Origin: Phyllobates terribilis
Taxonomy: Eukaryota
Reading direction: 5' to 3'
DNA length: 64,000 bases
Assembly: GCF_046119375.1 (NCBI RefSeq)
Contig: NW_027362761.1
Span: 1,145,512,001 to 1,145,576,000 of the forward strand
In this document: positions 4,653-53,543 of the stretch, one piece after another
How the letters are laid out: every line of letters begins with the position of its first letter
Numbering within the stretch: the first letter of the stretch is position 1
The notes under the pieces: model-generated
What the model was told of the DNA's origin: nothing
Seen by the model: the letters and a program-made list of their open reading frames with translations, nothing else
Databases searched by the model: none
Position numbers and translations under genes: made by a program

Positions 4653-6195
4653 CACTGTGTGCAGAATTATTAGGAAAGTTGTATTTTAGAGGATTATTTT
4701 TATTACTGATCAACAACTATGTTCTCAATCAACCCAAAAGACTCCTAAATATCCAAGCTTAATATTTTTGGAAGTTGGAGTGGGTTTTTTTTAGATTTGG
4801 CTATCTTAGGAGGATATCTGTTTGTGCGGGTAACTATTACTGTGCAGAATTATTAGGCAACTTTAATAAAAACCAAATATAATCCCATCTCACTTGTTTA
4901 TTTTCACCAGGTAAACCAACATCAGTGCACAAAATTTAGAAATAAACATTTCTGACATGCAAAAACAAAAACCCAAAAAATTAGTGATGAATATAGCCAC
5001 CTTTCTTTATGATGACACTCAGCAGCCTTCCATCCATAGATTCTGTCAGTTGCTTGATCTGTTTTCGATCAACATTGCATGCAGCAGCCACCACAGCCTC
5101 CCAGACTCTGTTCCGAGAGGTGTACTGTTTTCCCTCCCTGTAGATCTCACATTTTATGATGGACCACAGGTTCTCTATGGGGTTCAGATCAGGTGAACAA
5201 GGGGGCCATGTCATTATTTTTTCTTCTTTTAGACCTTTACTGGCCAGCCACGCTGTGGAGTAGTTGTATGCATGTGATGGAGCATTGTCCTGCATGAAAA
5301 TCATGTTTTTCTTGAACGATACTGACTTCTTCCTGTACCACTGCTTGAAGAAGTTGTCTTCCAGAAACTGGCAGTAGGTCTGGGAGTTGAGCTTCACTCC
5401 ATCCTCAACCCTAAAAGGGCCCACAAGTTCATCTTTGATGATACCAGCCCATACCAGTACCCCACCTCCACCTTGCTGGCGTCTGAGTCGGAGTGGAGCT
5501 CTCTGCCCTTTACTGATCCAGCCTCTGGCCCATCCATCTGGCCCATCAAGAGTCACTCTCATTTCATCAGTCCATAAAACCTTTGAAAAATCAGTCTTAA
5601 GATAAAACGTCAAGAATGGGCCAAGAAATATCTTATGTTTCTTGTTCAAAGGTGGTCGTTTCTCAGCCTTCCTTACCTTGGCCATGTCCCTGAGTATCGC
5701 ACACCTTGTGCTTTTTGATACTCCAGTAACGTTGCAGCTCTGAAATATGGCAAAACTGGTGGCGAATGGCATCTTGGCAGCTTCACGCTTGATTTTCCTC
5801 AATTCATGGGCAGTTATTTTGCGCCTTTTTTGGCCAACATGCTTCTTGCGACCCTGTTGGCTATTTGCCATGAAATGCTTGAAAAGTTTGGAAATTTCAA
5901 GACTGCTGCATCCCTCTGCAAGACATCTCACAATTTTGGACTTTTCAGAGCCCGTCAAATCTCTCTTCTGACCCATTTTGCCAAAGGAAAGGAAGTTGCC
6001 TAATAATTAAGCACACCTTATATATGGTGTTGATGTCATTAGTCAACACCCCTCCTCATTACAGAGACGCACATCACCAGATTTACTTAATTGGTAGTTG
6101 GCTCTCAAGCCTATGCAGCTTGGAGTAGGACAATATGTATAAAAAGTATCAAAGTGATCAAAATACGCATTTGCCTAATAATTTTGCACACAGTG
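4653..6195 (-). mobile_element. Tc1/mariner DNA transposon, DD37E (TRT-like), 1543 bp
   Basis: TA target duplication at 4651-52 and 6196-97; TIR CACTGTGTGCA(G/A)AATTATTAGG; inner repeats at about 4839-4860 and 5996-6016; transposase ORF 4981-5976. Confidence 0.92.
4981..5976 (-). CDS. Tc1-family transposase, 331 aa, open frame but probably defective
   Basis: Motifs WTDE, QDNAPSH and SPDLNPIEN, with 37 residues between the second D and E. Contains an in-frame 24-bp inversion (5605-5628) and an apparent short deletion in the N-terminal HTH. Confidence 0.85.
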   Translation of the reverse strand: MGQKRDLTGSEKSKIVRCLAEGCSSLEISKLFKHFMANSQQGRKKHVGQKRRKITAHELRKIKREAAKMPFATSFAIFQSCNVTGVSKSTRCAILRDMAKVRKAEKRPPLNKKHKIFLGPFLTFYLKTDFSKVLWTDEMRVTLDGPDGWARGWISKGQRAPLRLRRQQGGGGVLVWAGIIKDELVGPFRVEDGVKLNSQTYCQFLEDNFFKQWYRKKSVSFKKNMIFMQDNAPSHAYNYSTAWLASKGLKEEKIMTWPPCSPDLNPIENLWSIIKCEIYREGKQYTSRNRVWEAVVAAACNVDRKQIKQLTESMDGRLLSVIIKKGGYIHH

Positions 6196-9100: not shown

Positions 9101-10079
9101 GGGGGCTGTTACTTTTTTCTCCTGCATGATGTTGCCCAATCCTAAGCTGGAGACATCATGCAGAAGGGAGGAAAAAAAATGCTTTTTCCCAGAGAATGTC
9201 AAACCCGGCTTTCTCTGGATGATATGGTCTACTACTTACTTACAGCCAAAGCTATTGGACAATTCTCTATACTCCTCCTTCTAGACCTGTCCTCTGCCTT
9301 TGACACAGTTGACCACTGCCTCCGACTACAGATCCTCTCTTCCTTTGGCATCAAAGACCTTGCCCTATCCTGGATCTCCTCATACTTTTCCAACTGTGTC
9401 CCCACTCCCACACTACCTCCTCATCCCGCCCTCTCTCTGTTGGAGTCGCTTAAGGCTCTGTCCTAGGACCCCTACTCTTCTCCAGCTATACCCTTGGCCT
9501 GGGGCAACTCAAAGTCCCATGGCTTCCAGTACCATCTGCACACTGATAACACTCACATCTACCTCTATGGCCCAGACGTCACCTCTCTGCTGTCCAGAAT
9601 CCCAGCATGTCCATCAGCCATAACCACCTTCTCCTCTCGCTTCCTCAAGCTCAATGTGGACAAATCTCAACTCATCATCTTTCCTCCATCTCGCGCATCT
9701 TCCCCATCTGATCTATCACAGTAAACATCACGCTTTCCCTTGTACCAGAAATCCACTGCCTTGGTGTAGCCCCTTGACTCTGCCCTGTCCTTCAAACCGC
9801 ACATCCAAGCTCTCACCACCTCCTGTTGCCTCCAGCTCAAAAATATTTCCAGAATCCGTCCTTTCCTCAATCTACTAAACTGCTTGTGCATGCCCTCATC
9901 ATCTCCCGCCTCGACTACTGCAACATCCTCCTCTGTGGCCTCCCTGCTAACACTTTCGCACCTGTCCAGTCCATCCTTAACGCTGCTGCTGGACTAGTTC
10001 ATCTCTCTCCTCCTCTGCTCCCCCCCTTTACAAATCCTTTCACTGACTCCTAATTACCCAGCCTATCCAGTTCAAACTA

Positions 10080-10485
10080 TGCAAATTGTCTCTTCAGAGA
10101 GGAAGAGAACTAGAACTCTAGCGCCACCTACAGGAAGTAGCAATCCTAAAAGTCAATATTGACCCTTTAACATGACTTAGGATAAAAGCCAAGACCAGAA
10201 ACTCAATTTGCAGACACTGTTTCGGGGTACTGCCCCTCATCAGTGCAAAGTGTGAGATCTGGTTTGGCTGGGTGAAAGGCGTCAGACCGGTATCTAAACA
10301 GTAACGTTTCTTCTTGCGGAGAGCAACATGCTAAGCACGTCAAGGTGAGGAGACTGAGCCACAATGCTCCTCTGAGAAATATGAAAATTGTCTCTTCAGA
10401 GAGGAAGAGGCCTAGAACTCTAGTGCCACCTATTGGAAGTAGCGATCCTAAAAGTCAATACTGACCCTTTAACGAGTTTGAGCCC
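10080..10485 (-). mobile_element. Hammerhead-containing, terminally redundant non-coding retroelement (retrozyme / Penelope pLTR-like), copy 1
   Basis: 302-bp period (10080 repeated at 10382, about 95 bp redundant); probable target duplication gttcaaacta (10070-79) / gtttaaacta (10486-95); no ORF; hammerhead at 10207-10249. Confidence 0.75.
10207..10249 (-). ncRNA. Minimal type I hammerhead ribozyme
   Basis: Minus strand reads UUUGCA-CUGAUGA-GGGG(CAGUA)CCCC-GAA-ACAGUGU-C-UGCAAA. The complete core, 6-bp stem I, 4-bp stem II, palindromic short stem III and GUC cleavage triplet are all present. Confidence 0.88.
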
Positions 10486-12987
10486 GTTTAAACTACTAAA
10501 CACTAACCTACAAAACCATCCATAACCTTTGTCCTCCGTACATCTGTGAACTAATCTCTCCTTCTTTCCTCCACACTTATTGGCTCCTCACCCAATCGCC
10601 TCCAAGATTTCTCCCGAATATCCCCCGTCCTATAGAATTCTGTGCCTCAACACGTCCGATTATCCGCCACATTTGGATCCTTCAGACAGAACCTGAAAAC
10701 CCATCTCTTCAAGAAAGCTTACAACCTGGAATGACCCCGCTGCCACCTCACCACCACCAAAGCTGCTGCAACCCCCCAACCTACTGTCTCCTTCCCCATC
10801 ATGTAGAATGTAAGCCCGCATGGGCAGGGTCCTCTTCCCTCTGTACAAGTCTATCATTGTTAGTTTGTTTACTGTAAGTGATATCTGTATTTTGTAAGAA
10901 ATTCCTGTCTCATGTACAGCACCATGGAATCAATGGTGCTATATACTGTAAATAATAATACGGTAAGACTGATGTTTCTACCCAGGTCACACTGAGATCT
11001 CACTCCCGCCATTTACTGTTATTACTGGTGCAGGGGGTAAGACAGTTGTGCGGCAATAACATTAAATATTCTGCTATGCATCTATTCCAGACACTGGAGA
11101 ATAATGCCCTGCTACTTAGAATAGATGCAGAATAGTGTGTATAACACACTGCAGCTCTCATCTCACAGCACTGACAGTATTGGGGGAGGAGAGCAGTGCT
11201 GTGTGTCATTACATACAGCAAGCTGTATCTATCCCAGAAACACAGCTCTGCTCTCCTCCTGGATCTAGGACTCACAGATAATGCAGAGCGCTGTAATAAC
11301 GCACAGCTCTGCTCTCCTTCCTCACACTATCAGTGCTGTGAGATCAGAGCTGCAGCGCGTCATATACAGTATATCACTCTGGATTTGTGCCAGCTGTTAC
11401 AGCAGTATTCCACGATGCCTGTGATGGATGCATAGTGGTATACGTAATGACACAGTTCTGCTCTCCACCTGGCACTTGAAATCATAATAGTTGCTGGCAG
11501 TAAGATGAGTGAACTGGAGAGGAAAGCAGAGCTGTGTGTCATTGTCTTACTAGATCACTGAGAAAAACCTTTTCTGGGGGCATTTTCTTTTTCTCCCGCA
11601 TGACGTCTCCTGCTCATGATTGGGCACCATTAAACAGGGGGGAAAGTAACCACCCCCATCTCTGCTAATACCTCCTTGGTTATAACAGAAATTAGCTTGT
11701 AAAGGTTAGCATGTAATCTCTTTGCAACCAAGATGAGAAATAAAATTAAAAACTACGTTTTGTTCAGATCTTCAACAATTTTATCACAATGTGGTTAGCA
11801 TGTAAAAACGCAACTATGTGGCTGATAGGAATGACTTTTATTTTTTTTTTCTTTAAAAAAAAAAAAAAGCAGCGCTCTGCAGGCCCTTAAGGAATGAAGA
11901 ATGACTGTCGAGTATGCACACTGCTGCCCAATTCTTGCAGGAATAAAAGCTCAGCGGTACAATGTGGGTCCAAGTGATCAGACCTCCACCGATCAACAAT
12001 TTATTGCCTATCCTGATGGAATCAGTTGCAAAGAAGGCAGTGTCCAGTTATAAGGCAGCCAAATAATGCTTCCAAGGGTGAAAAAAAAAAAAAAAAAGCG
12101 TGAACATAGCCCAAGATATATATAAAAAAAAAAACACAACAACCATAAATACTTAAGAATATCTGTGGATTTGGAGATCCTAATCATATGAGAGAAGTTC
12201 AACCACACAGACAGAAGTCAGTTTCACAGAAACATTTAATGTCATACAAAAATGGAAATAATGTCTTGTGTACAGAGACTGGATTTATGTCAGCTGCCGA
12301 ACAAAACGAGGCCGGTGCGTCCGGAGGACGCGGCTCCACCGAACATCATTAGACCTCTGCGCTCCAGGGACGCCCTTCTAGAAAACACGGCAATATCCCA
12401 AACAATTGTGTAAACATTAATGTACAAAAGTGATACAAAACCAGCACAAGAATGAAAAAGAGAACCACACAAAGACAGCGAGGTACGCCGAGGAAGATCC
12501 AATCTGCCGGTGTCTTGGACTTGTTTTTGGTGGGGGGGTCACGATTACGGCACTTAAAAGCCCGGCATATTTCATGGTCCGTATATGACCAATAAGTCTG
12601 TGGTGACCCGAACTTATAGTCTTTGATGTGTCTCCAAGGCTACAATTTCGGGTCATTGTGGTTCGTATACGTACAATATGGCTCGTGTGAACCCAGCCTA
12701 AGAAGCCATTTCTCCTGACGCTCTCCCTACCGCCTCCAGCATCATGAAATCTCTGGTATCGTACTGGGGTTTTTGTTTGGCGCTTCTGTCGAGTTGCACT
12801 GTAATTTGGCACATCTGGGGGAGGTGGGGGGATCAGCACTGTAAGGGTGTATACAATTGGGTTTTGAATGATGAGATTTGTTCATTGAGGCTCAGGTAGA
12901 AAACATTTGGGGAAACCTTGCCCTACAAGTCAACATAATATGACCTTGCATCTCTGAGCAAAAGTAACCAAATACACCAATGACTTA

Positions 12988-19399: not shown

Positions 19400-20254
19400 C
19401 GCTGTGTGGCCACGAAGAATTTTTCAAGCCTTTATGCTGCGGAATTTACACAGCATAAACGCTTGGGAAACACTTGGTAATCCGCCCCCCATGGTCCCCA
19501 ATGAGAAGCCGCAATTTCAATGCCCATGCTGCGGATTTTTCCACAGCGTTATTGATGCGCTCAAAAATACGCAGCATGTCCATTCATTTTGCGGACACGC
19601 AGCGTAATCGCCGCCATTGACTTGCATTGAAATGCATATTATCCGTGTCAGCACATTTGCACCCATGGATGATATGCACTTCTATGTGTGGATGGCACCC
19701 GGGTCTGGAGGACAGGAGACTCTCCTTCGGACCCAGGTACCATAGAACCTGTGAAAAAAAAGAATAAAATAAAAAATAAATATTATATTTACCTTCGGCT
19801 GGCCCCCACTGCGTTTGTCTTCACTTGCCGGCAGCTCGCGGTGGACTGAAGGACCTGCGCTGACGTCATAGTCATGTGATGGCAGGTCCTTCAGTGTGCT
19901 GCTAGCTGCCAGCAAGCCAGGACGGAGCGAAGCAAGACTCCGGGGGCCATCGGAAGGCAAGTATAGATTTATTTTTTTTTTACCATTCTTTAAGTTCACA
20001 CTATATAAATCCATGCAAACGGCATGGATTTATATAGTGTGACCAAGTTCACAAGCACTTTCCAAGTGATGCTAAAATCTCTTGGAAAGCGCTTGTCAAC
20101 CGGCATGCGGAAATGCATGTGAAGAAAGCTTCACATCCGCATGTCCCTGGCAGGAAAAACAGATGTACAATCCGCATGCGTTTTTTCTGCCAGGGAGATG
20201 CAGAAACGCTCAGGAAAAAATCCTAAGCGTTTCTGCATCGTGGGCACATAGCCT
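19400..20254. mobile_element. MITE family A copy (TIR GGCT(A/G)TGTGCCCAC)
   Basis: Right TIR GTGGGCACATAGCC, degenerate left TIR; colinear with 21405-22256. Confidence 0.75.
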
Positions 20255-26299: not shown

Positions 26300-29200
26300 C
26301 TCCTCCGTCCTGCTTCATTTATGCCTATGAAGCATTTCCATCAGGTTCAAAAAGGCTTTTGGAACCAAAATTTATTTTTTTTTGCTAGGAAGTTATAAGG
26401 GTTAAAAGTTGACCAGAGGGTCATAAAGTCTTGTTTTTTGAAGACTATTCCATAGAGGTAACCAGAAAACGCAAGGCTTTCAGCCCCATTTGCACCAGAC
26501 TCCATAAAGAAAAAATCCGCTTCCAACTCCGATACCCAGCCACATTATGATTGAAAGATTCAGATGGATCCTTCCGGGAATTTATTTCACCTGACAAGGC
26601 GGAGGTCTTTGTCAACAAGCTGTTGTGCCCAAGAGACAACCTAAAACGACCCCCACAAATGGACAACAGGTCCCACTACTCACAGACCCCAGAAGGATCT
26701 ACGAACCGGGTGCGCAAAGGAGAACAGAAAAATAATAATAAGACGACAAGTAAAGTTAAATAAGAAATGATTTTCCTTCCTTGCAGACATACTGAGGTAG
26801 ACTGTCGTCTTATTTGTCATATTATTATCGGAACTTTTGCCCCCTTCATCTCCGAATTTTTGGGGCTTTGTTGACATATTGCATTTGGTGGAAGGGGGAG
26901 AGGTGAGGGTGAGGCGAAAGCATGGACAAAGGAAAGAAATACAACATAATGGAAATGACGGAATTACTAGTAGTTATATACACATGGTCGGGCAGAAGTG
27001 AAGCCCAGGAAAAAGGTCCTTCCCGGCAAGATGGAGCAAAATGTTCCCACTCTTGCTGGGACTAATATGTTGTGTTATATATGTTACTTACTGTTCAAAT
27101 TTAGTATATAAGGCTGAATTCTATGTTTGTTTTCTTGTTCGTTCTTGCTTTCTTTTATGTAATCTAACTGCATGCCATCATAGCCATATGATTGTCTCTC
27201 CAGTTATACTTACCTACTTCAACTCTGAATAGGACTATTGTGACCAGGAATGTTAAAGGACTGAGACCCCCCCAAAAACGCATGAAAATCCTTCGGCATT
27301 TAAAACGCCTAAAACCGGATATAGCCCTCCTACAGGAGACGCACCTTCCAGAAGTTGATTTCCCCAGGATGAAGAAACTATGGGTGGGTAGTGTCTATGG
27401 TTCCCCTTCAGTGGACAGAAGAGCTGGGGTCCTAATCCTCATTAATAAACATTACACACACCAAATCATTAGCCAACAGACAATGAGGGTAGACTGGCCC
27501 ACCTAATAATATCTACGCTGGAGGGGGTTTTCTCTATCTACAACATATATGCCCCCAATGCAGGGAACAACTGGAGACTAAACTCCTACTGGACTCCAAT
27601 CCTAATAAAGTAGCGGGAGGTGACTTCAACTCGGTGGCCTCAGTTCCTGAGGATAGGGAAAATATCACAGGTGCCCGTCAAACAATAACTATTCATGACA
27701 AAGAGCTTTTGCCCCTTATGTCTGCCTGTTAGCTGACGGATTCCTGGAGACTTCTCAACCCTAGTAACAGAGAATATACTCACTTTTCACAAGCAAATGA
27801 TTCATGGTCTCGGATCGACTATATACAGTACTTGTCTCCCCCTCTATGGTATCCAAATTAATTACATATTACTGACATAGTCATATCAGATCATGCCCCA
27901 GTAACTATTCAGTTATCCAAGACCTTCCCCGGGGCTCTGACTTTCTTTGGAGATTTCCTAACTACTTTTGCAAAGAGGAATCGTTCATCTTCTCTCTCAA
28001 ACTATGGTGGCAGGAGATCATCCCGGATAACTCGGTGCACCAGGATGACCCTATGCTTTTAGGGGAGACGGCGAAGGCGGTACTTCAGGGGAAAATTCTG
28101 GCATATACATTTTCCCAGAAAATAAAAAAAAAAAATGCTTAAAAAATATAGTGAACTCTCCACTGAGCTAAAACGAGCCTACACCAAATTCTTACTTGAC
28201 CCATCCCTCATAAATAAGGAACACTGGTCACAAAAAGACACAATTTAATCTCTATGCAGATTTAAGGGAAAAATTTTAATCTTTCTAAGTCAGAAACCTA
28301 CTTCTATAGATTTGGAATTCAGCCAGGACTGATGCTAGCTAATTTAGCTAAAGGAATGAAGAAACCACAAGGAATATTCCAGCTAAGAAACTCAAAAGGA
28401 GAGATTCACACCAACCCTAAAACAATAAAGGAGATCTTAGGCTCGGTTTATAAAGACCTAGAAGACCTATACAAAACCCAAAACAAACCCCCTCCGCCAC
28501 ACTTACACTCCTGGACAAGGTAAAGCTGCCCACCTTCTCAGAGGAACAAAGGTGCATGCTGAATAAACCTATATCCGCAGAGGAGGTCACCAATAAAATT
28601 AAAAACTTGAGTCTAAACAAAGCCCCCCAGCCCTGATGGCTATACGAACGAATTCCTTAAATCGCTGGTGGTAGAAATCTCCCCAATGTTGGTGCCGATC
28701 TTTAATAAAATCTCAAGTTTATCCCATTTTTCCATCCGCAAACATGGCATACAGTACAGACCAAAAGTTTGGACACACCTTCTCATTTAAAGATTTTTCT
28801 GTATTTTCATGACTATGAAAATTGTACATTCACACTGAAGGCATCAAAACTATGAATTAACACATGTGGAATTATATACTTAACAAAAAAGTGTGAAACA
28901 ACTGAAAATATGTCTTATATTCTAGGTTCTTCACAGTAGCCACCTTTTGCTTTGATGACTGCTTTGCACACTCTTAGCGGTGTCCTTTTTTTCAGAAGTG
29001 CACAAAACTGTGGCCAACCGCACTTTTATGCACGCCTAAATAAACTGACACCGTGGGATCACAGGCCAGACGGCATCCACAGTGGCCTATATCTGCCTCA
29101 TTACAGGGAATCAGTGTGAATGTACAATTTTTAAAGTCATGAAAATACAGAAAAATCTTTAAATGAGAAGGTGTGTCCAAACTTTTGGTCTGTACTGTAT

Positions 29201-29690
29201 ATTAAATTATTAAAGCCAGATAAAGACCCTGTGTCCTCCAGTTCTTATAGGCCAATCTCTCTCATTAATGCAGATATCAACATCATGTCCAAAATAATGG
29301 CAGATAGACTGGCCTCCATATTGCCCAACCTGATATCTCCTGCTCAAGCGGGTTTTATTAAGGGCCGATCAGCTACTTTGAATATAAGAAAGGTACTCTT
29401 GGTTCTAGGTAAAATCCACACCTCACCTAACTTAAAAAACTCCCCAGCAATCATCTCATTAGACGCAGAAAAGGCCTTTGATAACATAAATTGGGAATGG
29501 CTATATAAGGTACTAACAAAAATGTCATTAACAGGCCCCTTCTTTAACTACATACGTAATTTATACGCATCTCCAAAGGCTCAGGTTTACACTCCAGGCT
29601 TTTTGTCCACTCCCTTTCCCTTGGAAAAAGGAACGAGACAAGGCTGTCCATTGTCCCCCTTCCTGTTCAATTTAGCTCTGGAACCCTCAG
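26300..29690 (+). mobile_element. Decayed L1/Tx1-clade LINE, antisense within TADA2B intron 1
   Basis: ORF1 C-terminus (FFEDYSIEVTRKRKAF...RFQLRYPA); APE domain (RNVKGL..LLQETHL); RT domain (YRPISLIN, SLDAEKAFD, GTRQGCPLSP); many stops and frameshifts; cut off by a MITE at about 29690. Confidence 0.88.
28752..29197. mobile_element. Tc1-derived chimeric MITE inserted in L1 ORF2
   Basis: TA duplication; about 87-bp TIRs (CAGTACAGACCAAAAGTTTGGACACACC); the L1 reading (MAY|IKLLKPDKDP) resumes across it. Confidence 0.88.
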
Positions 29691-32496
29691 GCTATGTGCC
29701 CACGTAGCAGATTTGATGCAGAGCGTTTTTGCCTCTCTCTGGCAGAAAAAAAACCGCATGCAGATTTACATGCGTTTTTTCAAGCAGTTTTCCAACCGAT
29801 TTTGAGCATCACTTGGAAAAGTGCTTGACAAGTTGGTCACACAATATAAATCCATGCAACCGGCATGGATTTATAATGTGTGAACAACTGATGCTTTAAA
29901 TGCAGCATCTATAGTAAAAAAAAGAGAATTAAAACGTTAAAAATAAACAAAATCTGTATACTCACCTCTCCGGCGGCCCCCAGTCTGCTCCTGGCCACGT
30001 CCTCTCTCTTCGGGGTCCTGCAGTGTGCTGTCAGGACCTGCGGTGACGTCATTTAGTCAGCTGATGGTCACGCGACCATCACCTGACCGCCGCCGTCAGC
30101 GGTCGCGTGACAATCAGGTGACAAATGACGTCACCGCAGGTCCTGACAGTACACCGCGGGACGCCAAGGAGAGAGAACGTGGCCGGGAGCAGACCGGGGG
30201 CAGCCGGAGAGGTGAATGTACAGGTTTTGTTTATTTCTTTTTTTCACCGCGGGGTAGCCGGTATGAGGAGGAGTTGTAGTCTCCTCTTCATCCTGGGTAT
30301 CACACGCACCGCGATTACGCTGCAAATTCGCGGCCATTGAATTTAACTGAAATGCAGCAAATCCACATATACCTGCGGGTTTGCTGCATTTCAATGTTCC
30401 TCAATGGCCGCGAATTTGCAGCGGAATTGCGATAGAAATGGTCATGCTGCGTTTTGCGACGCAATGCGAATTAAATAAATAAAGAATTCTAACTTTTTCC
30501 ACAAAAATGATCTTTTAGCCCCAATTTTTTATTTTCACAAGGTTAAGAGGAGAAAATGGACCCCAAAAGTTGTTGTGCAACTTCTCCTGAATAAGCAGAT
30601 ACCCAATATGCGGGGAAAACCCACTGTTTGGGCGCACGGCAGGGTTCAGAAGGGAAGGTGTATAGTGCACATTTTGATGCACCAAGTAACGCGAGTGCTC
30701 AATTGACATGTTCGAGTCCCCACCCGCATGTTTCATGGTTGTTAGACATCCAAAAAAAAGATGTGGGGATTGCTCGTATATGGCAGGCAATCCCCGCTTG
30801 ATTTTCGTGTTTTTTTTTTTTTTGCTGTATAACAGCTGCGAAACATGGGGGGCCTCGAGCATGTCACTCGAGCACCAGCGATACTCTGTGCGCACCCGAT
30901 GCAAACTCAAGTAGTGAGCACTTGCTCTCAGCACTAGTCACCATATCATCATCATTTTTATTTCTTTACTTTTGAAAAAATCCCAACCACAACCCTATCC
31001 CAAGGGATCTATTCACTATAATGAGGCAGCAGAGTTACTCTGTGGTCCATCTGGCCTTTGTTTAGCGGTGTCCTTTTTTTTCAAAAGTTCACAAAACTGT
31101 AGACGACGGCACTTTTATGCACCCTTAATAAAAAAGATGGACATCGTGGGATCACAGGGCAGACAGCGTCCACGGTGTCTCCATCTGCCTCATTACAGGG
31201 AATCTTCCGCCAGGGATTCGGTCTGAATAATGTATTTCAGAGATTTACACGGAAACCCTAGTGTAAAATAATAAAGGAGTGCTCATATTACTCCCTTCCC
31301 AACACTTCCTAGGTCACCAGCCTCTGTACACTAAAGCATTTTAGCCAATAACTGGCTGCAGCAGTGACCAATATGTGACTGGTTACACCAACATTAGGAC
31401 CTACTAGGAATCACAGAAACTGGTGGGGAACCTGGGAACGGCAGGAGATTGGAACCAGTTTGTTAAAAAAAAAACACACACAACAACAACAACAACAACA
31501 CACACACACCCACTAATTTAGTTGCTGGAGAACCTCCTTAATTTATATATGTCATAATCAATATTAATAAAAAAATAAATATAAAAGACAATAGTCTGCC
31601 CTCCATACAGGGTAGGTTATACGGCAGACACCTACCTCTAACGGCATCAACCAGAGCTAGCTCCGATCACTGCTGTTTAACTAGTTAAAGGGATCGTCAG
31701 CACAGAATTACTGTTCAAACCAAGCACTGGTGCTCAGTACATCATGGCACGGCCAATCATATAACGACACCTTGCCACCTGCTTGTTTTCCCATCTATCT
31801 CCCCCTTATTTGATTGACAGCACTGGCTTCATAGAAGCAGAGATAGAAGGAAAACAAGAACTTAAATGACTGGCCACGCCACGATGCACTGAGCGCCTGT
31901 GCTTGGTTGGAACAGTCATCCTGTGCTGACAGAATCCCTTCAGGGTATGTGCACACCATCAGGAATGCTTGATGCTGCGTTCAAAGCGCTGCGCGCAGGT
32001 TAAGCCGCATGTGTTCATTGAACACATGCGGCTTCACCGCATCCTATCCATTGCACTGGTAGAATTTCTCTTGCGGAGACCAGCGACTCTGCAAGAGAAA
32101 TAGACATGCTGCGGTCTGTGAAGACGCGCCGCATGTCTGTCTCCGCGGGTGATCCGCAGGAGCACGGCAACACATAGTGGGCAGGGGATTTGTACAAATC
32201 CCATCCACTATGCTCTATCATCTGGCCGCTGCAGATTTCACTGTAAGTAAGAATCAAATCTATTACAATGTAGAATTATTTAATCCACAAGGTGAACCAT
32301 GGAAGGAGACAAAAAAAAAAAAAAAAGGGTTTTTTTGGTCACTGCACCCCTCCCTCCCAAAAAAAAACATACAAGAGACATAGATAAAAGCATTGTATTT
32401 ACCCAAAAGTGGAGCCAATAAAATCTTCAGCTCACCATGACACAAATCCTAACATAGCATCATAGACAAAAAATAAATACAATCGGTTTGTCTTGT

Positions 32497-32805
32497 NNNN
32501 NNNNNNNNNNNNNNNNNNNNNNNNNNNNNNNNNNNNNNNNNNNNNNNNNNNNNNNNNNNNNNNNNNNNNNNNNNNNNNNNNNNNNNNNNNNNNNNNNNNN
32601 NNNNNNNNNNNNNNNNNNNNNNNNNNNNNNNNNNNNNNNNNNNNNNNNNNNNNNNNNNNNNNNNNNNNNNNNNNNNNNNNNNNNNNNNNNNNNNNNNNNN
32701 NNNNNNNNNNNNNNNNNNNNNNNNNNNNNNNNNNNNNNNNNNNNNNNNNNNNNNNNNNNNNNNNNNNNNNNNNNNNNNNNNNNNNNNNNNNNNNNNNNNN
32801 NNNNN
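32497..32805. other. Assembly gap (309 N)
   Basis: N run. Confidence 1.
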
Positions 32806-33995: not shown

Positions 33996-35885
33996 ATGGA
34001 AGACGTGAGCGGCGGTGACAGACCACCTGCTGGTATTCGTCAGCCTATTATACAGCCGGGCACTGGTCAAGGGGCTGCCAGAGAGCAAGGTACCAGCCAG
34101 GCGGGGGAGAGAGAGCCGGGACCTGGTCAGGAGGGTGCCAAAGAGCCGGGCACTGGTAAAGATGGTGCCAGGGATCCGAAAACCAACCATGAGGGCACCA
34201 CAGAGACAAGTACTACTGAAGAAGGCACCAAAAAGCCAAACACCAGCCTAGAGGGTACCAGAGAGCCGAATACCAGCCTGGAGGGTACCAGAGAGCCGAA
34301 TACCAGCCCGGAGGGTGCCAATAAATCAAACAGCGGACTGGAGGGCCCCAGAGAGCCAAATACAAGCCGGGAGGGTCCCAACGAGTCAAGCAACAGACCA
34401 GAGAGCTCCATATATTCAAGTACCAGCCAAGACGGCACCAGAGACCCGAGTACCAGCCAAGAGGGCCCCAGAGACCCAAGTACCAGCCAAGAGGGCACTA
34501 GAGACCCAAGTACCAGCCAAGAGGGCACTAGAGACCCAAGTACCAGCCAAGAGGGCACTAGAGACCCAAGTACCAGCCAAGAGGTCACCAGAGACCCTGA
34601 AGCTTCTGTCGAGTCAGAGAGTGTCAGAGATCCTAGCACTGGGCACATAACGAGCTATGAGGCAATGGAAGAAGATGGCGAGATTGGCTCATCACAGCAG
34701 CAAGGTGAAGACCCGGAGGGCACCAATGATGACCCGTCACAATTCTGCAACCTAAGTGAAGAGTATGCCTCTGAGATGGATCAGGAACCCAAGGAAGACA
34801 CTCATCCTCATCTAGAAGAACACAAAGAAGATCAGGAGAATGTAGAGCAGAACCAGGACCACGAGCTGCTGGAGATGGTCCATGAGAAGCAAATTGAAGA
34901 AGAACTGATCCAGCAGTACCACGCTATGGTCCAGGAACGTGAAAAGATCCTACAGCACAATGCTCAGCTCCAGCACAAGCTCTACGAGTATTTCCGCAAG
35001 AAGAAAGGAGAAGAGACCCGTCCTGAGACTACATCAAAACGCGCAAGTGATCAGGAGCAACGCTACCTGAAGTATCTGACCAGCCTGGAGGAGATGAGGA
35101 GGAGGCACAAAGAAGAAGCCTCTTTGCATCAGGAGCAGATGGAGGAGCTGAGGGCTCAGTGCCAGGACATTGTGAGCAAGGTGGACAAGGAATGGGCGGC
35201 TTTCCAAGAACAGAAGAAGAAGATTTCCCTGTGTAGCCTGAGTAAGCAAGGAGCTGGTAAGCACGCCGCCTCCTCCCTCATCCAAGAAGTCGACTTATTA
35301 CAGTCCAGGGAAGAACGCAAGGAGAAGGAAGTCATCCAAGTCCGCCTAGAGAACATCAAGCTGAAAAATCACATCAACCGCTACGAATCCACTCTCCGCT
35401 CCAAGGAGGAGTTGGCCGAAAGTCTGCACCTTATTGATTTTGAGCAACTGAAAATAGAAAACCAAACATACAACGAGAAGATCGAGGAAAGGAACGAGGA
35501 GCTGCTGAAACTCAGGAAGAAAATTACCAACACAGTGCAAGTGCTCACTCACGTCAAGGAGAAGCTCCAGTTTGTCCAAGCGGAGAATCAAGAGCAAAAA
35601 GAGAAACTCATGGAGGTGGAGGCTCTAGTGGGCAACAAACGAGACATTTTGACAAAGACTAAACAGGCCAGAGATAGCTTGAGGATGGATAACTTGAAAC
35701 TGAAGGAAAAGTGTGGCCTTCTGGGTAACAAGGTTCTTCTCAGAGACTTTGAGGATAAGGTGGACGCCGCTGAAGAACTCAGACAGACCCTGGAGAATCT
35801 GAAGCGCCGGCATGCAGAGCTAACGCTGTCCAGTAAGGGGTTAGAGAAGAAAATCAATGAGGTCAAACTTGTGATGGACGATTGA
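33996..35885 (+). CDS. CCDC96: Coiled-coil domain-containing 96 / CFAP184, intronless, 629 aa
   Basis: C-terminal DUF4201-type coiled coil (LHLIDFEQLKIENQTYNEKIEERNEELLKLR...THVKEKL); syntenic position head-to-head with TADA2B; AATAAA at 35915-35920. Confidence 0.93.
   Translation: MEDVSGGDRPPAGIRQPIIQPGTGQGAAREQGTSQAGEREPGPGQEGAKEPGTGKDGARDPKTNHEGTTETSTTEEGTKKPNTSLEGTREPNTSLEGTREPNTSPEGANKSNSGLEGPREPNTSREGPNESSNRPESSIYSSTSQDGTRDPSTSQEGPRDPSTSQEGTRDPSTSQEGTRDPSTSQEGTRDPSTSQEVTRDPEASVESESVRDPSTGHITSYEAMEEDGEIGSSQQQGEDPEGTNDDPSQFCNLSEEYASEMDQEPKEDTHPHLEEHKEDQENVEQNQDHELLEMVHEKQIEEELIQQYHAMVQEREKILQHNAQLQHKLYEYFRKKKGEETRPETTSKRASDQEQRYLKYLTSLEEMRRRHKEEASLHQEQMEELRAQCQDIVSKVDKEWAAFQEQKKKISLCSLSKQGAGKHAASSLIQEVDLLQSREERKEKEVIQVRLENIKLKNHINRYESTLRSKEELAESLHLIDFEQLKIENQTYNEKIEERNEELLKLRKKITNTVQVLTHVKEKLQFVQAENQEQKEKLMEVEALVGNKRDILTKTKQARDSLRMDNLKLKEKCGLLGNKVLLRDFEDKVDAAEELRQTLENLKRRHAELTLSSKGLEKKINEVKLVMDD
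34052..34600 (+). repeat. 30-bp coding tandem repeat (10-aa unit, EGTRDPSTSQ-like) in CCDC96
   Basis: About 18 units, diverged at the 5' end and nearly identical at about 34420-34590. Confidence 0.9.
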
Positions 35886-39430: not shown

Positions 39431-39855
39431 GGTCAAGTTTCTCCATGGGGAGAGTGACAGCCAGGCCTGACATGTCATAGTAAGGAGACTTATAAGCCAT
39501 GCATGCTTCTCTGGGAAATTAAATATGCAAATTGCCTCTTCAGACAGGAAGAGGACTAGAACTCTAGCGCCACCTATTGGAAGCTGTGATCCTAAAAGTC
39601 AATATCGACCCTTTAACGAGCCTTGCAATATGACTTTTGATAAAAGCCAAACCAGAATCTCAATTTGCAGACACGGCGTTTCTGGTTGTTGCCCCTCATC
39701 AGTGCAAAGTATGAGATCTGATTTGGTTAGGTGAGAGGCTTAAGACTGGGATTTAAGAGGTAAGGTTTCTTGTGGAGAGTGACATGCCAGGCCTGGAATG
39801 TAGAGTGAGGAGACTTATAAGCTATGCATACTCCTCTTGGAAATTAAATATTTTC
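39431..39855 (-). mobile_element. Hammerhead-containing terminally redundant element, copy 2 (circularly permuted)
   Basis: 325-bp period (39450 repeated at 39775); flanking cccatgg duplication (39424-30 / 39856-62); hammerhead at 39664-39708 with intact core but disrupted stem II. Confidence 0.7.
39664..39708 (-). ncRNA. Degenerate type I hammerhead ribozyme
   Basis: UUUGCA-CUGAUGA-GGGGCAACAACCA-GAA-ACGCCGUGU-C-UGCAAA; the stem II closing G-C pair is lost. Confidence 0.65.
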
Positions 39856-41122
39856 CCCATGGACACATGCACACTCGGCCGAGCCAAATTTTCACGTGTA
39901 TGGGGGAATCGGAAGGAAGAGTCGTCTGACTGTGCGCCTTCGTGTCCACCACATGACCCGGACTGATTTTTAGTCCTGAGGAGCAAACAAAGGATTCTAC
40001 AGAACGACAGCGAGCAGAACTCTTAAAAATAGTAAGGAAGTGAATATTGGAAAACTGAAACTTTACATTATACAAACTGTAATATGGGGAAAATATTTAA
40101 TGGGGATTTATCAGTAAATTCAATTCTCACCTGTGCGCAAGATAAAAGATGTATAATCGAAGGGGTCCGACTGCGGGGGGGTCCGCACAGATCACGTCAA
40201 TTCTGTCAATCATACAGAAAATGGAGTGGTGGTCATGATTGCACCTCACAGCTCCATTCACAGAGGAATCAGGGACCCCCCTGCTCTCGTGATAATTGGG
40301 GGTCTTAGTGGTCGGCCCTCCAGCAATCATACACTTATCACCTCTTATTCTGTGATCAGTTTATTCTCGGAAACAAATAAATTGAGAACCAGGTGTTACC
40401 ATTCCCCTTGTAAATGGGGTAAATCCCTACTCATTGACTAAGCAGTACTCTTCATGTACGGTCGTCAATTCATTCAGGAATAACATACGATTTAATGTGA
40501 AGTTATTGATTAACATGATTTTCTTTTTTATTTAGAAGTGGGGGAGGAAGCAAAGTGGCCATATTTTGTCAAAACTACACCCCCCTCAACAAGTATTGTG
40601 GCTATGTGCCACTCTGAGGGGCCATGGTGTTTGATGACCCCCCACAAGCAGAGTACATTTATACAGGTCGCTGCCAATAATTTATAGTTTTATAAATTCA
40701 TGCGTACAATACATACCTCAGCTGCTACAGAACCTCACTACAAAGAACAGGGCAGATTCCAGTCTACTGTTGATTTATATGACACTTTCTCATCCTTTTC
40801 AACAAGTAGAAGCATAGACCGTGTGTTATGATGTTTTGCAGCAGCTGGGGTTCATGCTGTATGATTTACTGACTGCTGTACACAGTCAGAGGAGACCGCC
40901 GCTCCATTCATCCCCTATGGAGCTGCAGAATGGAATGACAGTCCGGCATCAGACCTGCCAATCCATCCTTCCATTGCCGATTAGAGCAAGTCCCAGCAGT
41001 CGGATCTGCAAGTTATCACCTATCCTTTAAAAAGGACTCGTTACCAGTGCAAAAGTGGCCAGTGTTTGCCCTTATTTTATTCCTGCTGACTGTTCGGTTG
41101 TGTGTATTGTAATATATATATA

Positions 41123-42995
41123 CACTGCTCAAAAAAAATAAAGGGAACACTTAAACAACACAATGTAACTCCAAGTCAATAACACTTCTGTGAAATCTAC
41201 CTGTCCAGTTACGAAGCAACACTGATTGTGAATCCATTTCTCCTGCTGTTGTGCAAATGGAACAGACAACTGGTAGAAATGATTAGCAAGATACCCCCTA
41301 TAAAGGAGCGGTTCTGCAGGTGGTGACCACAGACCATTTCTCTGTTCTCATCCTTTTTGGCTGTTGTTTTGGTCCCTTTTCATTTTGCCTTTGCTCTCAC
41401 CCCTAGAGGTACAGTAGCATGAGGCGGTGTCTACAGTACAACCCACAGAAGTTGCTCAGGTAGTGCAGTTCATCCCGGATGGCACATCAGTGCGAGCTGT
41501 GGCAAGAAGGGTAGCTGTGTCTGTCAGCATATTGTCCAGAGCATGGAGCAGATACCAGGAGATGTGGAGGGAGCCATAGGAGGGGAACAACCCAGCAGCA
41601 GGACCGCTACCTCCGCCTTTGTGAATGGAGCAACAGGAGGAGCACTGCCAGAGCCCTGCAAAATGACCTCCAGCAGGCCACAAATGTGCATGTGTCTGCA
41701 CAAATGGTTAGAAACCGACTCCATGAGGGTGGTATGAGGGCCTGACGTCCACAGATGGGGGTTGTGCTCACAGCCCAACACCGTGCAGGACGCTTGGCAT
41801 TTGCCACAGAACACCAGGATTGGCAAAGTCACCACTGGCGCCCTGTGCTCTTCACAGATGAAAGCAGGTTCACACTGAGCACATGTGACAGACGTGATAG
41901 AGTCTGGACACGCCGTGGAGAGCGATCTGCTGCCTGCAACATCCTTCAGCATGACCGGTTTGGCAGTGGGTCAGTAATGGTGTGGGGTGGCATTTCTTTG
42001 GAGGGCCGCACAGCCCTCCATGTGCTCGCCAGAGGTAGCCTGACTGCCATTAGGTACCGAGATGAGATCCTCAGACCCCTTGTGAGACCATATGCTGGTG
42101 CGGTTGGCCCTGGGTTCCTCCTAATGCAGGACAATGCCAGACCTCATGTGGCTGGAGTGTGTCAGCAGTTCCTGCAAGATGAAGGCATTGAAGCTATGGA
42201 CTGGCCCGCCCGTTCCCCAGACATGAATCCGATTGAGCACATCTGGGACATCATGTCTCGCTCCATCCACCAACGTCACGTTGCACCACAGACTGTCCAG
42301 GAGTTGGCGGATGCTTTAGTTCAGGTCTGGGAGGAGATCCCACAGGAGACCATCTGCAACCTCATCAGGAGCATGGCCAGGCGTTGTAGGGAGGTCATAC
42401 AGGCATGTGGAGGCCACTCACAATACTGAGCCTCATTTTGACTTGTTTTAAGGTCATTAAAAGTGTTGAACGAGTATGTTCTGTCCGCGTATGCTCGGGC
42501 CGAGCTCCGAGTATTTATAGCTGCTCGGTGATATGGTTGAATCGCTCCCGTGTGCATGATTTGCAACTGTTTGGCAGCTTTATTACATGTGAGGAATGTG
42601 TAAGAAATAGACATTCCTCACATGTAATAAAACTGTCAAACAGTCGCAAATCATGCACACGGGAGCGATTCACGCATATCACTGAGCAGCTATAAATACT
42701 CGGAGCTCGGCCTGAGCATACTCGGCGAAAGGGTTAACAGAACATACTCTCTCAACACTAGTCATTACATCAAAGTTGGATCAGCCTGTAGTGTGTTTTT
42801 CCACTTTAATTTTGGGGGTGACTCCAAATCCAGGCCTCCATTGGTTAATAAATTTTATTTCCATTGATTATTTTTGTGTGATTTTGTTGTCAGCGCATTC
42901 AACTTTGTACAGAACAAAGTATTCAATGAGAATATTTCATTCATTCAGATCTAGGATGTGTTATTTGAGTGTTCCCTTTATTTTTTTGAGCAGTG
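41123..42995 (+). mobile_element. Tc1 DD34E transposon, full length but defective
   Basis: TA duplication; TIR CACTGCTCAAAAAAAATAAAGGGAACAC; N-terminus (ATG about 41419) frameshifted; catalytic region 41755-42429 open (TDESRF, QDNARPH-34-E). Confidence 0.9.
42461..42760. mobile_element. hAT-type palindromic MITE nested in the Tc1
   Basis: (T/A)AGTGTTGA...TCAACACTA termini; 8-bp duplication GTCATTAA / GTCATTAC. Confidence 0.8.
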
Positions 42996-47834: not shown

Positions 47835-48003
47835 NNNNNNNNNNNNNNNNNNNNNNNNNNNNNNNNNNNNNNNNNNNNNNNNNNNNNNNNNNNNNNNNNN
47901 NNNNNNNNNNNNNNNNNNNNNNNNNNNNNNNNNNNNNNNNNNNNNNNNNNNNNNNNNNNNNNNNNNNNNNNNNNNNNNNNNNNNNNNNNNNNNNNNNNNN
48001 NNN
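47835..48003. other. Assembly gap (169 N)
   Basis: N run. Confidence 1.
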
Positions 48004-53222: not shown

Positions 53223-53543
53223 NNNNNNNNNNNNNNNNNNNNNNNNNNNNNNNNNNNNNNNNNNNNNNNNNNNNNNNNNNNNNNNNNNNNNNNNNNNNNN
53301 NNNNNNNNNNNNNNNNNNNNNNNNNNNNNNNNNNNNNNNNNNNNNNNNNNNNNNNNNNNNNNNNNNNNNNNNNNNNNNNNNNNNNNNNNNNNNNNNNNNN
53401 NNNNNNNNNNNNNNNNNNNNNNNNNNNNNNNNNNNNNNNNNNNNNNNNNNNNNNNNNNNNNNNNNNNNNNNNNNNNNNNNNNNNNNNNNNNNNNNNNNNN
53501 NNNNNNNNNNNNNNNNNNNNNNNNNNNNNNNNNNNNNNNNNNN
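53223..53543. other. Assembly gap (321 N), probably hiding two TBC1D14 exons
   Basis: N run located between visible TBC1D14 exons. Confidence 0.95.

Follow-up and report, generated by a model that had tools for sequence, protein, structure and literature searches.

Two dispersed hammerhead-bearing repeats in a dendrobatoid frog are probably old copies of a ~300-bp non-LTR retrozyme family

What kind of element leaves a 406-bp insertion that lacks coding capacity, carries a hammerhead motif and interrupts a LINE in a frog genome? A preliminary description of the 64-kb stretch of DNA analyzed here (the window) had reported such an ORF-less insertion with a target-site duplication of ~10 bp, and both were recovered: the element occupies 10080–10485 (copy A; ribozyme strand minus), and its flanking duplicates, gttcaaacta at 10070–10079 and gtttaaacta at 10486–10495, are identical at 9 of 10 positions. 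The chance of a duplication of this grade was estimated at 20,000 random positions in the window: two points separated by 407 bp were taken, and a 10-mer shared between them to within ±6 nt, with no more than one mismatch allowed, was counted as a repeat. Such a repeat was present at 199 positions (1.0%). A chance origin of the copy A duplication is thus unlikely, but by itself the duplication is not overwhelming evidence.

The insertion was also said to lie in an L2 element. A LINE remnant on the plus strand does flank it, and the L2 label stays putative. The left part of the remnant (9158–10079) consists of a reverse transcriptase (RT) fragment, detected in a Pfam scan as an RVT_1 remnant at 9158–9466 (E = 3.8e-5), and a C-terminal region. 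In translation, the conserved C-terminal peptide is interrupted by copy A and resumes past the duplication, in the right part of the remnant (10496–10560). The last ~160 codons of the host LINE contain at least three in-frame stops and at least one frameshift; these figures are lower bounds from a count that was not exhaustive. The window contains no paralogous empty site, the flanks of the host LINE having no second copy there. Just to the right of the host LINE, at 11060–11470, is a group of nested long inverted repeats with arms of 33–48 nt that are 71–91% complementary. This region looks like a MITE-like hairpin, and its inverted repeats account for weak matches to miRNA models in Rfam.

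Copy A is longer than one repeat unit. The sequence at 10075–10171 recurs at 10377–10473 with a spacing of 302 bp and an identity of 88/97, which agrees with the ~1.3 copies of a 302-bp monomer proposed at the outset and gives a value of 1.34 units. From the spacing between the repeated ends, a full unit of 302 bp can be placed at 10080–10381 (minus strand), followed by a partial second unit at 10382–10485 (minus strand) that amounts to ~0.34 of the full length, has ~92 nt of clear homology and is without a hammerhead. Tandem Repeats Finder did not report this repeat because it has too few copies. The last 12 nt of the insertion (10474–10485) match neither the first unit nor, with any clarity, the second copy described below, and may represent either filler at the junction or element sequence that has diverged. 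When the copy A unit was folded as a circle, the predicted energy was -88.5 kcal/mol (z = -2.7 against shuffled sequences, i.e., moderately more stable), and the hammerhead appeared in that fold as a separate, self-contained local domain.

A descriptor scan of both strands of the window identified exactly one hammerhead, on the minus strand at 10249–10207, where a complete type I motif had been described; the expected number per window in Markov shuffles was 0.002 with the strict descriptor and 0.047 with a lax one. The motif comprises a helix I of 6 bp, the CUGAUGA box, a helix II of 4 bp closed by a 5-nt loop, GAAA, a 7-nt helix III segment (2 bp and a 3-nt loop) and GUC, with the predicted cut between C17 at 10213 and the next base at 10212. 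The three helices are arranged round the core, with helix I open-ended and helix II starting with the G10.1–C11.1 pair. The conserved core is complete, with the CUGANGA box, GAA, the A15.1–U16.1 pair and a nucleotide other than G at position 17. Beyond helix I, a 3-nt/1-nt internal loop is followed by a 4-bp CUCA/UGAG stem that extends the feature to 10202–10256 (minus strand). This extension had been suggested earlier and is predicted with pair probabilities of 0.92–0.96. The 3-nt/1-nt internal loop and the 5-nt loop 2 are possible sites of the tertiary contacts that link loops 1 and 2 in canonical metazoan motifs.

A second copy (copy B) was found by BLAST of the copy A insert against the window, and its bounds were then taken from the alignment. 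It occupies 39431–39850 (minus strand; 420 bp, ~1.29 units of ~325 bp) and is flanked by a probable target-site duplication of 12 bp, in which 39419–39430 matches 39851–39862 at 10 of 12 positions. The two copies have the same orientation and are identical at 262 of 312 positions (84%), and their flanks are unrelated. Copy B retains a degraded hammerhead at 39664–39708 (minus strand), which preserves the core boxes, GUC and helix I; of the four pairs of helix II two are gone, and the segment for helix III is longer by 2 nt. This motif fails the descriptor and gave no hammerhead match in an Rfam search, and the circular fold of the copy B unit was not more stable than shuffled sequences (z = -1.1). 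Since core boxes, GUC and helix I are common to both copies, the motif was present in their common ancestor.

The two DNA copies in this window make up the family comparison, and they differ in phase. Copy A runs from 0 to 302 of the unit and then from 0 to ~104, whereas copy B runs from ~220 to 302 and then from 0 to 302; the copies are therefore circularly permuted and have no common 3' end in either orientation, yet both inserts are ~1.3 units long despite their unequal unit lengths. The left end of copy A (10080) and the right end of copy B (39850) fall at the same unit phase, in an AT-rich stretch (p ~0.07), and at the left junction of copy A target and element agree at 5 of 6 bases. The shared phase could mark where copying preferentially starts or stops, or it could be chance.

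Both copies appear to be old. Their duplicated ends have diverged at 9/97 positions in copy A and 11/92 in copy B (~9–12%), and the target duplications differ to a similar extent (1/10 and 2/12, respectively), as expected if each pair was identical at the time of insertion. There is one hammerhead at each locus, so neither can release an RNA of unit length from the transcript it gives. As published, the working definition of an active retrozyme calls for two or more successive units whose motifs are complete, and both loci fall short of that number. With one ribozyme each and ~9–12% divergence of their ends, copies A and B are most likely inert fossils.

Further relatives were sought at the protein and nucleotide levels. 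The longest stop-to-stop frames in the elements are 83–87 aa, and searches of real protein families found no relatives of these frames apart from another repeat copy. The 83-aa minus-strand frame of copy A had no relatives in a protein search. For the 87-aa plus-strand frame of copy B, there was one true relative, the C terminus of CAJ0967168.1 from another dendrobatid, Ranitomeya imitator (46% identity over 63 aa), which is fused to a Tc1 transposase in a chimeric gene model; a further search with this C terminus returned no others. The second copy in unrelated flanks and the translated relative in the R. imitator gene model bear out the original proposal of a repeat family. Three tandem-repeat proteins also matched by the copy B frame were rejected as unrelated, and the two loci examined have neither a hammerhead nor similarity to the element. 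A 20-mer common to both hammerheads had no matches in viral contigs. Its two matches in metagenome contigs were attributed to chance, both falling in a single bacterial coding region that lacks the remaining ribozyme boxes. The best-conserved block of the unit occurs in all three repeats (10119–10134, 10421–10436 and 39565–39580) and on the minus strand is similar to the core consensus for CTCF. The similarity was not taken as evidence of a CTCF site: the block has 3–4 mismatches in 16 positions to the consensus of bioRxiv 10.1101/024620, and the window holds eight such matches against 2.5 expected, one of them in the element.

The surroundings of the two copies identify the host. TADA2B (minus strand; coding exons from 33804 down to 18004) and the single-exon CCDC96/CFAP184 gene (plus strand; 33996–35885) are arranged head to head, ~190 bp apart, and the same arrangement occurs in Ranitomeya variabilis. 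The CCDC96/CFAP184 protein encoded in the window is 78% identical to that of R. variabilis, 74% to that of Dendrobates tinctorius, 70% to that of Anomaloglossus baeobatrachus and 64% to that of Bufo bufo; the closest relatives are those of poison frogs, and the host is accordingly a dendrobatoid frog. Copy A lies ~7.5 kb downstream of the last TADA2B coding exon, on the same strand as that gene, and copy B lies ~3.5 kb downstream of CCDC96. Two ORFs, at 4981–5976 (minus strand) and 41755–42429 (plus strand), encode Tc1-like transposases in which a DDE_3 domain is present. Runs of N occur at 32497–32805, 47835–48003 and 53223–53543, and ORFs called across the last of these are artefacts.

The reading that best fits these observations, to which we assign a probability of roughly 0.7, is that copies A and B are old, dispersed, non-autonomous copies of a ~300-bp non-LTR retrozyme family in a dendrobatoid frog. 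Metazoan non-LTR retrozymes have units of 150–450 bp, no ORF, a G+C content below 50% and target duplications longer than 4 bp, and they give rise to linear and circular RNAs (PMC7229834). The two copies have units of 302 and ~325 bp, G+C contents of 0.46 and 0.43 and duplications of 10 and 12 bp. Their units thus lie within the 150–450 bp range, with no ORF, no LTR, PBS or PPT, G+C below 50% and duplications above 4 bp. With their weak helix III and amphibian host they are also like the amphibian members of the class, the likeness to published retrozyme families being one of class properties. Amphibian hammerhead repeats of ~300 bp have been known since the newt satellite and were recognized as non-LTR retrozymes in 2020 (PMC7229834), when Cervera and de la Pena described Rtz_331 and Rtz_353 from the axolotl (PMC7229834). 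A 2026 preprint by Li, Clavereau and Pollet (bioRxiv 10.64898/2026.07.22.740005) extends the class. Its main text reports non-LTR retrozymes in all seven amphibians sampled, including three Xenopus species, with a mean unit of 316 bp, and describes 57 families in Xenopus. According to that text, ~300-bp retrozyme families are already described for frogs, and the lineage of copies A and B is not named there (bioRxiv 10.64898/2026.07.22.740005). The present copies differ from tandem-array non-LTR retrozymes in being dispersed, 1.3 units long and provided with a single ribozyme. In these respects they correspond to the dispersed 'monomer' derivatives that the main text of the preprint describes in amphibians (bioRxiv 10.64898/2026.07.22.740005).

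Comparison with other hammerhead-bearing repeats separates what is general from what is particular to the two copies. Satellite 2 of newts and salamanders (PMC7229834) is likewise an amphibian repeat, ~330 bp long; it has a type I hammerhead that cannot cleave as a monomer, helix III being too short. In copy A, by comparison, helix III has two pairs and a 3-nt loop and would contain a central mismatch in a dimer, and the frog copies are dispersed. The plant LTR retrozymes (Cervera et al. 2016, PMC4918200) also form a non-autonomous, hammerhead-bearing class that spreads through circular RNA, but only the plant elements have type III motifs, LTRs, PBS and PPT, units of ~700 bp, high G+C and 4-bp duplications (PMC4918200). 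The hammerheads of axolotl and other amphibian retrozymes need dimers for higher cleavage rates (PMC7229834), and the helix III predictions for copy A match this requirement, since the helix is unstable in cis and pairs in trans. Formation in cis costs +2.8 kcal/mol, whereas a 6-bp duplex of -5.6 kcal/mol is predicted in trans; for the longer segment of copy B, an 8-bp duplex of -8.0 kcal/mol is predicted in trans. The preliminary description had called stem III of copy A too short to be stable alone and palindromic. The first part holds, and the second is only approximately correct, the segment being of odd length, with a central G–G clash, and hence near-palindromic.

Retrozymes and Penelope-like elements (PLEs) are related through their hammerheads, and copies A and B could instead be remnants of 5'-truncated PLEs, each a piece of a pLTR, without forming an independent non-autonomous family. 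Type I hammerheads occur in PLE terminal repeats, and a single terminal repeat is what 5' truncation has left of most PLE insertions (PMC4209133 and the discussion of the preprint). [quoted passage not shown] The hammerheads of pLTRs (min-HHRs; Cervera and de la Pena 2014, PMC4209133) share with copy A the type I topology, the expected action as dimers, the association with retroelements and abundance in frogs, with ~9,000 in X. tropicalis (PMC4209133). Truncated linear copies should, however, have the same 3' end, which these two lack, and both copies exceed one unit of a ~300-bp period. The helices also differ. The usual vertebrate min-HHR lacks helix III, has 7–8 bp in helix II and 4–5 bp in helix I, and leaves a base unpaired after position 9 (PMC4209133), whereas copy A has 4 bp in helix II and 6 bp in helix I, lacks the extra base and possesses a helix III segment of 7 nt. 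These are the sizes of the canonical metazoan type I motif, with helix I of 6 bp, helix II of 4 bp and helix III of 1–2 bp with a 2–4-nt loop, which is inefficient alone and active as a dimer (PMC4209133). The 'minimal' subtype first assigned to copy A does not survive this comparison.

The coding evidence for a PLE is also negative. Neither copy is adjoined by a PLE ORF or by any trace of RT or GIY-YIG coding sequence. The window contains no tandem array and, among the ORFs scanned, no Penelope-like element, and this counts against the retrozyme reading as well. A search for Penelope-like ORFs sharing the unit had been proposed together with the retrozyme assignment. Thirty ORFs of the window, among them those round both copies, were scanned with Pfam, and no GIY-YIG domain, no PLE-type RT and thus no such ORF came to light. 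The one good RT of the window (29171–29707) is L1-like, is accompanied by an APE domain and has LINE-1 ORF2 proteins as its best solved relatives. It belongs to an L1-like LINE remnant at 27192–29707 (plus strand), in which an Exo_endo_phos ORF precedes an RVT_1 ORF; this remnant is not a Penelope-like element. An origin of copies A and B as truncated PLE remnants is considered unlikely.

Another concern is that the repeat is an ordinary interspersed or minisatellite-derived sequence, in which a hammerhead-like string arose fortuitously and was never catalytic. Strict motifs are expected by chance about once per 30 Mb, which amounts to a few hundred accidental motifs in a genome of several Gb, and for this reason the motif of copy A proves nothing alone and the argument rests on its context. 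The motif of copy B is broken. An Rfam search had been suggested as a check of the hammerhead, and it was unsupportive: the whole window gave nothing at the gathering score, and permissive searches (2.5 kb, and 161–171 nt round both motifs) gave only noise-level matches. The best alignment, from the 161-nt search, was to Hammerhead_3 and reached 15.6 bits where the cut-off is 48.5 (E = 0.71), with the wrong, permuted topology. Hammerhead variants with a short helix III score poorly in Rfam models, and the Rfam result therefore lowers the hammerhead claim without excluding it.

Folding predictions qualify the claim in a similar way. The minus strand had been said to fold into the hammerhead. 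All elements of the motif are present, but it is not the fold predicted to form spontaneously: in the minimum-energy fold of the copy A monomer (-17.3 kcal/mol), part of the core is engaged in a competing helix of 4 bp, whereas the hammerhead fold has -13.1 kcal/mol without helix III and -10.3 kcal/mol with it. By thermodynamic prediction, the active monomer fold thus lies 4–7 kcal/mol above the minimum. The only experimental series on frogs also counts against the claim: according to the preprint, most predicted retrozymes did not cleave in vitro, with one of nine dimers cleaved and eight of nine uncleaved (bioRxiv 10.64898/2026.07.22.740005). Against a fortuitous string, the chance of a strict motif in a given 300-bp unit is only ~1e-5, and the helix sizes, near-palindromic helix III, unit length, G+C content, permuted longer-than-unit insertions and amphibian host all fit the class described. 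We regard a never-catalytic, accidental motif as quite improbable.

A SINE-like origin, in which an L2/CR1 or L1 LINE enzyme copied a linear transcript and template switching or a later local duplication produced the internal repeat, would suit the abundance of LINE remnants in the window (the host LINE and the L1-like element) and the 10–12-bp duplications, which fit LINE-type insertion, but it is very improbable given that there is no poly(A) or microsatellite tail, no common 3' end and no tRNA, 5S or 7SL-like head in the Rfam search, and that the longer-than-unit structure is seen in two independent copies, which a chance secondary duplication would not repeat.

The non-LTR retrozyme reading also suggests how copies A and B would have arisen. 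Following the published class model, a master locus with at least two units would have been transcribed, and two hammerheads may have cut after GUC once their helix III segments, which are short and near-palindromic, had paired. At a nicked target, an RT acting in trans, most likely a Penelope-like one, could then have copied more than one turn of the circle or of the uncut multimer. Longer-than-unit copies in arbitrary phase, each with a target duplication, would be the outcome, and copies A and B would be products and not sources. We infer self-cleavage, a circular RNA and a Penelope-like helper from the published work on this class. To our knowledge, copying round a circle has so far only been postulated for animal retrozymes. 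The ~1.3-unit, permuted structure without a shared 3' end argues against a linear element with fixed termini and fits copying of circular or multimeric RNA. Copying of such RNA beyond one unit is the step postulated by the retrozyme model (PMC7761336; PMC4209133). It is tentatively suggested that the two insertions are footprints of reverse transcription proceeding more than one turn round a circular retrozyme RNA, with their shared phase marking a preferred start or stop; we hold this closer reading to be possible but somewhat doubtful.

For the family, these results extend the non-LTR retrozyme class to a dendrobatoid frog and introduce no new principle. Their modest added value is structural: two independent insertions, permuted and longer than a unit, each with a duplication, illustrate the copying of circular or multimeric RNA that has been postulated. 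If the circular-template reading is true, the phases of the junctions could test the model by sequence alone and show where copying begins, and the huge genomes of poison frogs may offer many such junctions for a descriptive test of the circular-template model.
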